Assembly (NCBI GenBank): GCA_002269645.1
Contig: NIVC01001632.1
Coordinates: forward strand, 124,001 to 188,000
Direction: 5' to 3'
Source: Macrostomum lignano
Lineage: Eukaryota
DNA length: 64,000 bases
Position 1 is the first letter of the stretch; each line of letters starts with the position of its first letter. The position numbers were made by a program, and so were the translations under genes. Below the pieces are notes generated by a model, which searched no databases, was not told the DNA's origin, and saw only the letters and a list, made by a program, of their open reading frames with translations. Of the stretch, positions 42,601 to 45,600 are shown piece by piece.

Positions 42601-45600
42601 CAGTTCTTCGTAACGACCTAAAAAACTGGATTCTGTAACTGTTGGATTCTTCACCAGCTGAGGGCACGCACGAATAGGCTTGTCTGACTATCGGTCGCCA
42701 TCAAAGGCTTTGCCAGGGGAGGAAAGATGGGGCATCAGTCGGGGCGCAGATATTTGCGGCAATGACTCATCCGGGTAGCTGATAGGGTCGGCTTTCAAGT
42801 CCTCCCCCTCCCGACTGCGGTTTTATGCTATCGGTGCACAAATGTCATAACCGACACTGATAATCCTTCTAATCTGTCCGATTGTAGCATTCTTTGATTA
42901 ATTAGGGCATCCAGGTGCGACCAACCTCCTGGATAGCAGGAAAATTATTGATTGACGGCTGTTTCTGAGAAAACCGTCAGGAAAATATCTGTTCAATCGA
43001 TTTGCAGTCACGTCTGTGTGCCATTGCGTAATAACTTATCATTCTGTAGTTTCCATGTGCTCTCCCCCACTGAGTTCTCCCCTTCTGAGTTCTCCCCTTC
43101 TGAGTTCTCCCCTTCTGAGTTCTCCCCTTTCTGAGTTCTCCCCTTCTGAGTTCTCCCCTTCTGAGTTCTCCCCTTCTGAGTTCTCCCCTTCTGAGTTCTC
43201 CCCTTTCTGAGTTCTCCCCTCTATTTGTCCTGCTCCCATTCCTCTTTCTTTAATCCCTCCATCAGTTTCAGTTCCCTGTCGACTTCTCTACAATAATCTC
43301 TATTTGGATTCGAATTCACTCTCCGAGAGACTGGTGAAACGGAGGGGAGCGGCAGCGAACCGGCCTCAGAGAGAATTTTTATCATTTTTTTACTAAGGCG
43401 GCCGGATTAAAAAAGAGATTTGAGGGCCGGGGCTCCGTGCTGCCTCACAGCTCTCTGTGCGTGACCTGGCGCAGACTGCCTGCATGGTCGGTCGGGGTAT
43501 CGTCAGGGCTCGATCCGCTGAGCTGCCTCTGCGTCCCGGGGTCTCAGCAGGATTGCTGGTTTTTGTCTGTCTGTCTGTCTGTCTGTCTGTCTGTCTGTCT
43601 GTCTGTCTGTCTGTCTGTCTGTCTGTCTGTCTGTCTGTCTGTCTGTCTGTCTGTCTGTCTGTCTGTCTGTCTGTCTGTCTGTCTGTCTGTCTGTCTGTCT
43701 GTCTGTCTGTGTCTGTCTGTCTGTCTGTCTGTCTGTCTGTCTGTCTGTCTGTCTGTCTGTCTGTCTGTCTGTCTGTCTGTCTGTCTGTCTGTCTGTCTGT
43801 CTGTCTGTCTGTCTGTCTGTCTGTCTGTCTGTCTGTCTGTCTGTCTGTCTGTCCGTCTGTCTGTCTGTCTGTCTGTCTGTCTGTCTATCTGTCTGTCTGT
43901 CTGTCTGTCTGTCTGTCTGTCTGTCTGTCTGTCTGTGTCTGTCTGTCTGTCTGTCTGTCTGTCTGTCTGTCTGTCTGTCTGTCTGTCCGTCTGTCTGTCT
44001 GTCTGTCTGTCTGTCTGTCTGTCTGTCTGTCTGTCTGTCTGTCTGTCTGTCTGTCTGTCTGTCTTAGTGTCTGTCTGTCTGTCTTAGTGTCTGTCTGTCT
44101 GTCTTAGTGTCTGTCTGTCTGTCTTTCTGTCTTAGTGTCTGTCTGTCTGTGTGTCTGTCTGTCAATCCGTCAGTTTCAATCTTCACCCAGCATCATATTC
44201 TGGAATCCCGGATGTCTACCCCACCACCCCCTCCATTATCCCGAGAGCAGCACTCAATCTCTAAGCCAGCATGGCCCAGCACTGCGCCAGAAGCATTACA
44301 TAATCAGGATTATGAGTTGTAAAGAGCCAAAAAATTGGCGAGGAAGAAAAGAGAAGGAAAATTTCTCTTAGAGTTTGGAGCTCCTGCTCTCTTCCCATTT
44401 GTGTCCTCTTGCGTCCCCCAAGGTAACTTCTCCCATCGCCTTGGTTCCATTCTTCCCAATTTTTCTACTCCAACCCCACCCGCCACTGTCAACGGAGCGG
44501 CGGCGGCTGCTCAACTAAAGAGTGATTACGCAATCGATATTTCTGTAACCAACTCGCAAACTTGGGCCGTGGCTGTTGCTCACCGCGGCTCCTCATTCTC
44601 TGAGTAGCAAAATGAAGTTTCAGCTTCTTTCGCATCAAGTTTAACGCGAGTGGCTGGCACTTTGCGATGCTTCGCTTATTGAATCTTCTGAAGGGTGGAA
44701 TGCGGAATAGTGAAGATGATGATGATGACGATGATGATGATGATGCTGGCCGATTGTTCCCCCACCTTCACGAGGTGGCCAGTGGACAAGACCCGAAAAA
44801 GTCTTGGCAAAGAAGGGAGCAAACGGAAGGGACCATGGATCGAAGCCACTGGCGGAAGCCAGTACGACGACACCGGCCCTTTTCACTCGTGGTACCCAGA
44901 AGTAGCCGACCTGGGTACCGAGATTAACCAGGCAAAAACCAGTGGACAGCACAAAGGTAGAGAGCTAGAGGAACAGCAGAGCCGCACAAGACCAAGCCGG
45001 AAACAAAGGTCGGCGGAAGTGAAAGCACAGCTGACGACAGTAGAGAAGAACCCAGGACCAAACAGGAAGGAAAGACCAAAGAAAGAATCCGAAAACCCAA
45101 GAAAAAGCACAAAACGACCGAAAACCCAAAAAGAGAAGAAAAGCAGACTAATCAGAAGAACCCGACGCCGTGGAACAAGAAGAACGAAGAAGATTAACAA
45201 ACGCAGAGAAACATTAAACAACGAGCTGAGAATAACAACATGGAATGTCCAGCGGGCAAACGTGTTCGGCACGCGTTTTGGAGAGATCGCAAAAAAGATT
45301 ATGAGTGAGAATTGGGAGGTAGCCCTCATCTCGGAGTTATCGGCACCGTCAGACGGAATAAGAAGTTACCACCAACCGAAACAAAATTCATTCCTGATTC
45401 ACGGCAAGAAAACAGGCATCATCCTAAACCAGGAATTGTACCAGACGTGGAAGGACAGCGGATCAAAAAAGAAGATTACGAACAGAGCGATCATGATAGA
45501 AATATACGACGCGACATTGATCAGCGTGTACTGCCCAGTTAGAGGCACTCCGGACTACGAAACGGAACTAGCAGAGCTCAGAAACACCCTGGAACGTTAC

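Follow-up and report, generated by a model that had tools for sequence, protein, structure and literature searches.

The locus described here raises the question of whether a mobile element sitting inside a host gene carries, as its very first bases, an RNA able to cut itself free from the host transcript. The stretch analysed, called the window below, comprises 64,000 nucleotides from Macrostomum lignano (GenBank assembly GCA_002269645.1, contig NIVC01001632.1, positions 124,001 to 188,000 of the forward strand), and it holds a retrotransposon without long terminal repeats (non-LTR) within an ARHGAP39-like gene. A preliminary description, made from the letters alone, had placed a self-cleaving ribozyme resembling that of hepatitis delta virus (HDV) at the 5' boundary of this element. 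Our analysis leads us to regard positions 44745-44822 as very probably such a ribozyme, 78 nt long, with which a young, full-length element of the RTE type (44745-48962) begins; its role would most likely be to cut the element RNA out of the host transcript. The proposed identity gained support from an independent covariance model, from covariation and from the same fold in seven further lineages.

Members of the HDV-like class are recognized by a nested double pseudoknot of P1, P2, P3, P1.1 and P4 (PMC4908430). In the window all five helices are present in the canonical HDV order, with P1 crossing P2, and the parts are laid out as follows:

44711..44744, + strand: 5' flank, a microsatellite of (GAT)n/(TGA)n with the same unit as the element's 3' tail
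44745..44822, + strand: predicted HDV-like ribozyme, nested double pseudoknot, 78 nt, predicted cut between 44744 and 44745
44745-51 with 44777-83, + strand: P1, GCTGGCC with GGCCAGT, 7 bp, terminal wobble G44745-T44783 at the cut
44752-53, + strand: J1/2
44754-61 with 44815-22, + strand: P2, TTGTTCCC with GGGAGCAA, 8 bp including one G-U
44762-63, + strand: J2/3
44764-66 with 44774-76, + strand: P3, ACC with GGT, 3 bp
44767-73, + strand: L3, TTCACGA
C44769-G44784 and T44768-G44785, + strand: P1.1, 2 bp, the second a U-G wobble
44787-92 with 44801-06, + strand: P4, CAAGAC with GTCTTG, 6 bp, the whole of P4 spanning 44787-44806
44807-14, + strand: J4/2, GCAAAGAA, holding the presumed catalytic C44808

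Read as RNA, 44745-44822(+) runs GCUGGCC GA UUGUUCCC CC ACC UUCACGA GGU GGCCAGU GG A CAAGAC CCGAAAAA GUCUUG GCAAAGAA GGGAGCAA. The J4/2 cytosine (C75 equivalent) is C44808, L3 supplies two nucleotides of P1.1, and the helices contain no mismatch. An automatic descriptor search returned the identical fold as its top solution for the region, so that P1, P2, P3, L3, P1.1, P4 and J4/2 all fall, by sequence and by descriptor, where the preliminary description had put them; C44762 and C44763, noted there as an imperfect top of P2, are indeed unpaired.

Base pairing on its own is weak evidence for a ribozyme, and a pairing-only HDV descriptor gave about 12 matches on both strands of the window. The nested minimum free energy fold is unremarkable (z = -1.15), as is to be expected of a method that does not model pseudoknots. 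A dispersed repeat with two copies, at 52150-52330 (+) and 8915-9095 (-), was the source of spurious AT-rich descriptor matches at 52199(+) and 9044(-), which were dropped as copies of an unrelated repeat. Among curated models, RF02682 of Rfam (HDV ribozyme, F. prausnitzii type) aligned end to end from exactly 44745 with 31.6 bits (E=1.4e-4 in the local search), and this match was the top hit among all 4227 Rfam families over the whole 64 kb (E=0.055). The model's GGCUAAGAUG was aligned to GGCAAAGAAG, C44808 fell on its J4/2 C, and its J4/2 GCUAAGA was placed over GCAAAGA of the window. The Rfam/Infernal check proposed beforehand is thus borne out as to the best match in the window, which is full-length from 44745, and fails as to the gathering score; a default scan of the window at gathering thresholds listed nothing. 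The Rfam HDV families are narrow. Relatives with clear folds likewise stay under the gathering thresholds, and the E-value mode applied to four whole loci missed even clear relatives.

A more specific comparison came from the relatives of the element. A relative of the open reading frame (ORF), from an ENA assembly of another organism, shares 45% protein identity, and four copies of its family (L001, L002, L005 and L007) show an HDV-like fold at the element start. Their helices differ from those of the window: P1 is GCUCGGU/ACCGAGC, P2 UGACUUC/GAAGUCA and P4 CAGGG/CCCUG. Since MAFFT put the ribozyme alignments out of register, a first covariance model (R1) was trained on these four ungapped copies alone, and the remaining sequences were aligned by Infernal. 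The best match of model R1 in the window was 44745-44823 (17.5 bits, E=0.005-0.008), full-length and with P1, P3 and P4 all kept; no better site was found in 128 kb of searched strand, and the same model found no matches in more distant loci. Weak covariance-model matches at window positions 29541 and 26665-26732 (E about 0.75-4) were taken as noise. A second model (R2), with the window sequence in its training set, recovered the untrained locus L021:22-92 (E=0.002-0.005), and with filters off its three best matches in 43 kb of untrained loci all lay at element 5' ends.

A profile search added nine further full-length relatives with 36-40% identity, from marine and other metagenomes, one of them a Tara Oceans sample. 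Complete HDV-like folds were found at the 5' ends of eight lineages (the window, L001a, the L001 short element, L019/L020, L024, L015, L008 and L021), and J4/2 holds C-A-A-A in 8/8. P2 cannot be represented in covariance models and was judged by descriptor across lineages. Its sequence is different in each of the eight, with complementarity kept throughout, the strands being TTGTTCCC/GGGAGCAA, TGACTTC/GAAGTCA, TGGTTGGA/TCCAACCA, GGTGGG/CTCACC, GGTGGAC/GTCCATC, TGGT/ACCA, TCTGGTTCG/TGGACCAGA and TGGATAA/TTATCCA. For P1, P3 and P4 taken together over five sequences, 98.6% of cells are paired and 9/15 pairs are changed on both sides, figures that come from few sequences and from an alignment fitted to the model; 0/500 shuffles reach the observed values, and slid partner columns are 29-44% paired. 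Covariation, named in advance as a check, is therefore seen as compensatory changes in P1, P2 and P4. The peptide encoded over the ribozyme shows no conservation (first ~40 alignment columns), which argues that the constraint acts on the RNA.

Short non-autonomous elements of ~330 nt accompany the autonomous ones (L001:2231-2556, L002:6546-6770 and L004:3027-3250), in or beside (GAT)n and the tails of autonomous elements. Each has its own 5' HDV-like ribozyme, P4 of the L001 one being about 81 nt. The complete L001 short copy ends in GGCGAAAAGGG(GACAA)n(GAT)n, like the autonomous element, and the upstream flank in L002 holds a 15-nt 5' fragment of a short element.

The position of the fold at the extreme 5' end was examined in the window and in the relatives. 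Tandem Repeats Finder reports a (TGA)n = (GAT)n run at 44711-44745, in agreement with the earlier remark that the predicted cut follows the (GAT)n flank without a gap. Upstream of four insertions of the L001 family the sequences are unrelated, and homology starts at GCUCGGU, that is, at P1 nt 1, with a G one base before it in 3/4 insertions; five insertions of the P0024 family, each flanked differently, share the start ACUUGCG, the predicted P1 nt 1. A shared start at P1 nt 1 is the trace to be expected if ribozyme cleavage is followed by full-length reverse transcription. The statement that the ribozyme lies exactly at the 5' boundary accordingly holds for two related families (4 and 5 insertions), whereas the window by itself offers one copy.

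The element that follows the ribozyme is composed of these parts:

44745-48962, + strand: full-length non-LTR retrotransposon, 4.2 kb
44746..48798, + strand: one intact ORF of 1350 codons, counting begun at the base after the cut, uninterrupted across the full length of the ribozyme
45037..45060, + strand: 2A-like 'StopGo' motif TVEKNPGP, about 100 codons into the ORF
45238..45933, + strand: APE-type endonuclease domain (Pfam PF03372, PF14529)
46858..47640, + strand: reverse transcriptase (RT) domain (Pfam PF00078)
48385..48795, + strand: C-terminal region with four C2H2/C2HC-type zinc fingers (Pfam zf-C2H2 at 48484-48546), conserved in relatives
48799..48833, + strand: 3' untranslated region (UTR), 35 nt, ending GGCGATAAACGGAG, which resembles a relative's GGCGACAAAAGAGG
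48834..48962, + strand: 3' tail, (GAA)5 then (GAT)38

The intact ORF together with the mismatch-free helices points to a recent insertion. Relatives have equally short 3' UTRs with other 3-5-nt repeat tails. Every relative carries xNPGP (DVEKNPGP, DIEPNPGP, IHPNPGP, IETNPGP). The 2A motif is defined as D(V/I)ExNPGP near the N-terminus of a long ORF, and earlier reports of such sites concern the clades Rex1, Crack, L2, L2A, CR1 and Ingi and do not include RTE (PMC3708506); the window motif has T where the definition has D and is a sequence match, activity depending on the upstream context. The zinc fingers may bind target DNA (microsatellite) or RNA. The 2A-like motif, the C-terminal zinc fingers and the course of the ORF through the ribozyme complete the preliminary account of the element, which did not mention them.

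The start of translation varies within the group. In four lineages J1/2-P2 contains an in-frame AUG at a distance of 9-13 nt from the predicted 5' end, and the P0025/P0026 lineages are without AUG, their ORF still being open from the first bases. For the window copy, either the fold would help a non-AUG start or translation would be impaired. If the flank 44716-44745 is translated in the frame of the element ORF, its repeat unit reads ATG and the product is MMMMTMMMMM. Borrowing of an AUG from an in-frame (ATG)n flank was rejected as a general rule: cleavage would remove the flank, and in L001 the frame of the ORF runs through the flank as GAT. That the (ATG)n flank of the window copy is in frame is probably a coincidence.

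Several observations weigh against the assignment as a ribozyme or against an active copy in the window. No Rfam HDV family reaches its gathering score (RF02682 31.6 vs 44, drz-agam-1 17.4 vs 37), and one of the two P1.1 pairs is a U-G wobble, not C-G. J1/2 is just 2 nt in the window, and short spacers lowered the activity of another HDV-like ribozyme (PMC4908430); the same length of 2 nt is found in 5/8 scanned lineages, and 5 nt in one. There is a single copy within the window, whose own 5' boundary is not independently defined there, and near its 5' end this copy lacks an AUG in frame, the first one downstream of the cut lying inside the APE domain. Among the relatives, L003 gave no convincing ribozyme in the descriptor search, and the P3/L3 region of L013, L022 and L023 contains inserted hairpins that could not be fitted to the canonical fold. 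In these three the extra hairpin lies between the P1 strands (L013:~80-190, L022:~343-430, L023:~261-353; e.g. ACACGUACGUGU, GGGCC-UUCG-GGCCC), with the P1, P4, GCAAA and P2 portions retained, and they may represent either decayed copies or a variant structure of the HDV fold.

RTE elements are described as having one ORF that encodes APE and RT, neither RNase H nor a separate ORF1, and a 3' UTR that is extremely short and ends in simple-sequence repeats (PMC2887409). Pfam finds only APE, RT and zf-C2H2 on the ORF, with no RNase H and no separate ORF1, and the 3' end, with its 35-nt UTR and (GAA)5(GAT)38, agrees with that description; the 2A-like site and the four C-terminal zinc fingers lie outside it. 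The best local scores of the RT were to RTE-1 and BDDF. In a neighbor-joining tree of 178 columns the lineage was monophyletic in 300/300 bootstraps, its sister was RTE in only 208/300, and an exclusive clade of lineage and RTE appeared in 140/300. The reference blocks were taken from the PMC2887409 alignment, a supplement noisy from optical character recognition of which one block was skipped, and the set was without the I, R1, LOA, Tad, Rex1, L2, Proto2 and RTEX clades. The label 'RTE' used at the outset is thus favoured by the single ORF, the short 3' UTR and the best scores and less so by the tree, and placement as a deep branch of the RTE group appears moderately supported.

The surroundings of the element point to a host gene on the same strand. 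A WW exon lies at 34102-34401 (+), a MyTH4 exon at about 53.7-54.1 kb (+), and RhoGAP exons at 55114-55554 and 56732-57124 (+). The underlying Pfam matches run over 34102-34398 for WW, within 53400-54110 for MyTH4, and over 55114-55551 and 56732-57121 for RhoGAP. The order WW, MyTH4, RhoGAP on one strand is the ARHGAP39/Vilse architecture, and by this domain order the host would be an ARHGAP39-like (Vilse / Porf-2 type) RhoGAP gene; the PDB contains no ARHGAP39 chain for comparison. The element has the WW exon upstream and the MyTH4 exon downstream of it and is in sense orientation; the next downstream exon is at least about 3.5 kb past its end. The same-strand ARHGAP39-like context given earlier is confirmed, WW, MyTH4 and RhoGAP all being on the + strand. 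A second, unrelated non-LTR retrotransposon at 24174-29230 (+) has APE, RT and RNase H besides an ORF1-like region and is broken by frameshifts into several ORFs; its 5' end (around 24.1 kb) gave no HDV-like match. Between the two RhoGAP-coding ORFs there is a ~1.2-kb microsatellite (55665-56900), which reads (ATC/CAT)n on the + strand and so is the complement of (GAT)n. The window as a whole shows an unusual abundance of long micro- and minisatellites (e.g. 283-2139, 5369-6483, 12026-14280, 36847-39699 and 58236-62819).

How the ribozyme might serve the element can be outlined as follows. RTE and baggins elements are promoterless and depend on read-through from introns or upstream elements (PMC6765202), and for promoterless RTE elements read-through from the host gene is the expected source of the element RNA. 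The element, with no promoter of its own recognised in this analysis, would be transcribed within a longer RNA, most plausibly the ARHGAP39-like pre-mRNA of the same strand. The ribozyme would fold as the RNA emerges, with C44808 as general acid/base, and cut 5' of G44745; the upstream host RNA with its (GAU)n would be left with a 2',3'-cyclic phosphate and the element RNA would receive a 5'-OH at its first base. The cleaved RNA might then act both as mRNA and as template, its ORF starting within the ribozyme. The 2A-like NPGP would split an N-terminal peptide of ~104 aa from the APE-RT-zinc-finger protein, and the (GAA)n(GAT)n tail would prime target-primed reverse transcription, often at (GAT)n sites. 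An active ribozyme would at the same time cut the host intron and might lower the level of host mRNA.

The alternative that keeps most of its force is that the family is real and the window copy inert, being untranscribed, or untranslatable for want of an AUG, and at present having no effect on element or host. The single copy in the window and the lack of any in-frame AUG from the cut to the APE domain speak for it, and we consider it unlikely all the same: the 4.05-kb ORF is fully intact and no helix mismatch is found, which points to recent insertion, the P0025/P0026 lineages keep their ORF open from the first bases without an AUG, and cutting requires transcription of the intron alone, not translation.

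A conserved fold that does not cleave would be a structured 5' element, for instance one to which the protein of the element binds, or a cap-independent translation element. Covariation proves structure, not catalysis; the ORF, and in four lineages the AUG, are embedded in the fold; and a potential role of HDV-like ribozymes in translation initiation of retrotransposon mRNAs is credited to them in PMC4908430 (citing Ruminski 2011). The residues needed for catalysis only (the J4/2 C followed by AAA, the L3 pattern, P1.1) are nevertheless kept across 35-45% protein divergence, and the start of copies exactly at P1 nt 1 is explained by cleavage and not by a binding element, which makes a non-cleaving fold improbable. 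That the resemblance arose by chance, or as a by-product of coding constraint on the N-terminal peptide, is scarcely credible: the roughly 12 pairing-only folds per 64 kb, the sub-threshold Rfam score and the coding nature of the region could be cited for it, but a model from another family picks the 44745 site and none better in its 128 kb, P1, P2 and P4 show compensatory changes, the peptide is unconserved over the ribozyme, and eight lineages have the fold at the same place.

Given a cleaving ribozyme at the head of the element, a wider proposal can be made, tentatively and as a possibility that we hold to be rather doubtful. Ribozyme and translation start might form one unit in a deep RTE-type lineage common in marine metagenomes: the mRNA after cleavage would be capless with a 5'-OH, its ORF would begin from an AUG in J1/2-P2 or, as in the window and in P0025/P0026, without AUG, and the sense intronic fold could attenuate the ARHGAP39-like gene. 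If true, this would mean 5'-end-dependent, AUG-independent initiation driven by the ribozyme fold, with 2A splitting as the next step. Variants with and without the AUG occur naturally and offer material for tests of ribozyme-assisted initiation, and the sense-oriented, mismatch-free intronic ribozyme is a candidate cis-acting reducer of the mRNA of the ARHGAP39-like allele, by analogy with CPEB3. Moreover, neither the window ribozyme nor any of its relatives passes the curated Rfam thresholds; a model specific to the lineage, of which our covariance model R2 is an example, would recover a family of ribozyme-headed long interspersed nuclear elements (LINEs) with their short non-autonomous partners from eukaryotic and marine metagenomic data. 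In this lineage a 2A-like site and microsatellite-type tails go together with an HDV-like ribozyme and with a start codon that lies inside that ribozyme or is missing altogether, a combination known till now mainly from trypanosome L1Tc.

It is established that R2, R4/Dong, baggins, L1Tc and RTE elements carry HDV-like ribozymes at their 5' ends (PMC3774820, PMC6765202, PMC4035085), and the preliminary description had rightly treated such 5' processing of R2, RTE and L1Tc as known (PMC3774820, PMC6765202). The best-scoring curated model, RF02682 from Faecalibacterium prausnitzii, matches in P1, P3, L3, P4 and J4/2; it represents a bacterial family, so the match reflects shared architecture and not close kinship. 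The R2 ribozyme (Eickbush & Eickbush 2010; PMC3774820) has the same fold and the same processing of a co-transcript at or near the 5' junction. A conserved R2 motif, CCUCCUCGUGG (PMC5035012), resembles the P3/L3 core of the window (ACCUUCACGAGGU) and of the L001 short element (ACCUCCUCGUGGU), and R2 of some species is also without AUG, like the window copy. In contrast, R2 has a restriction-like endonuclease and is 28S rDNA-specific, whereas the element of the window is APE-type and microsatellite-associated, and many R2 ribozymes cut upstream within 28S sequence, unlike the cut predicted here. Trypanosomatid L1Tc combines a ribozyme (Pr77, PMC4035085) with a 2A sequence (PMC3708506), but it belongs to a different clade (ingi/L1Tc), its Pr77 doubles as an internal promoter, and its sequences are unrelated to those of the window.

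With regard to the host, the mammalian CPEB3 ribozyme (PMC10919898) is, like that of the window, an HDV-like ribozyme in sense orientation in a host intron, where cleavage competes with splicing, and its inhibition raises protein levels (PMC10919898). The CPEB3 ribozyme is conserved host sequence and not a mobile element, and the exon distance of at least about 3.5 kb makes the timing relative to splicing differ from that in CPEB3.

The RTE elements of the drz-Agam-2 type (Anopheles gambiae; Ruminski et al. 2011 via PMC3774820, PMC6765202) share the double-pseudoknot ribozyme as first bases, the single-ORF LINE with APE and RT, the very short 3' UTR, the simple-repeat tail and the proposed role of freeing the element from a read-through co-transcript. 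At the sequence level no match to the Agam RTE ribozymes is detectable (Rfam drz-agam-1, 17.4 bits), and unlike drz-Agam-2 RTE the window element has an ORF running through the ribozyme, a 2A-like site, C-terminal zinc fingers and a deep branching position. The pairing of element and ribozyme is of a known kind, found here in a lineage that was uncharacterised before and is apparently widespread, and it leaves the established picture of how ribozyme-headed elements work unchanged.

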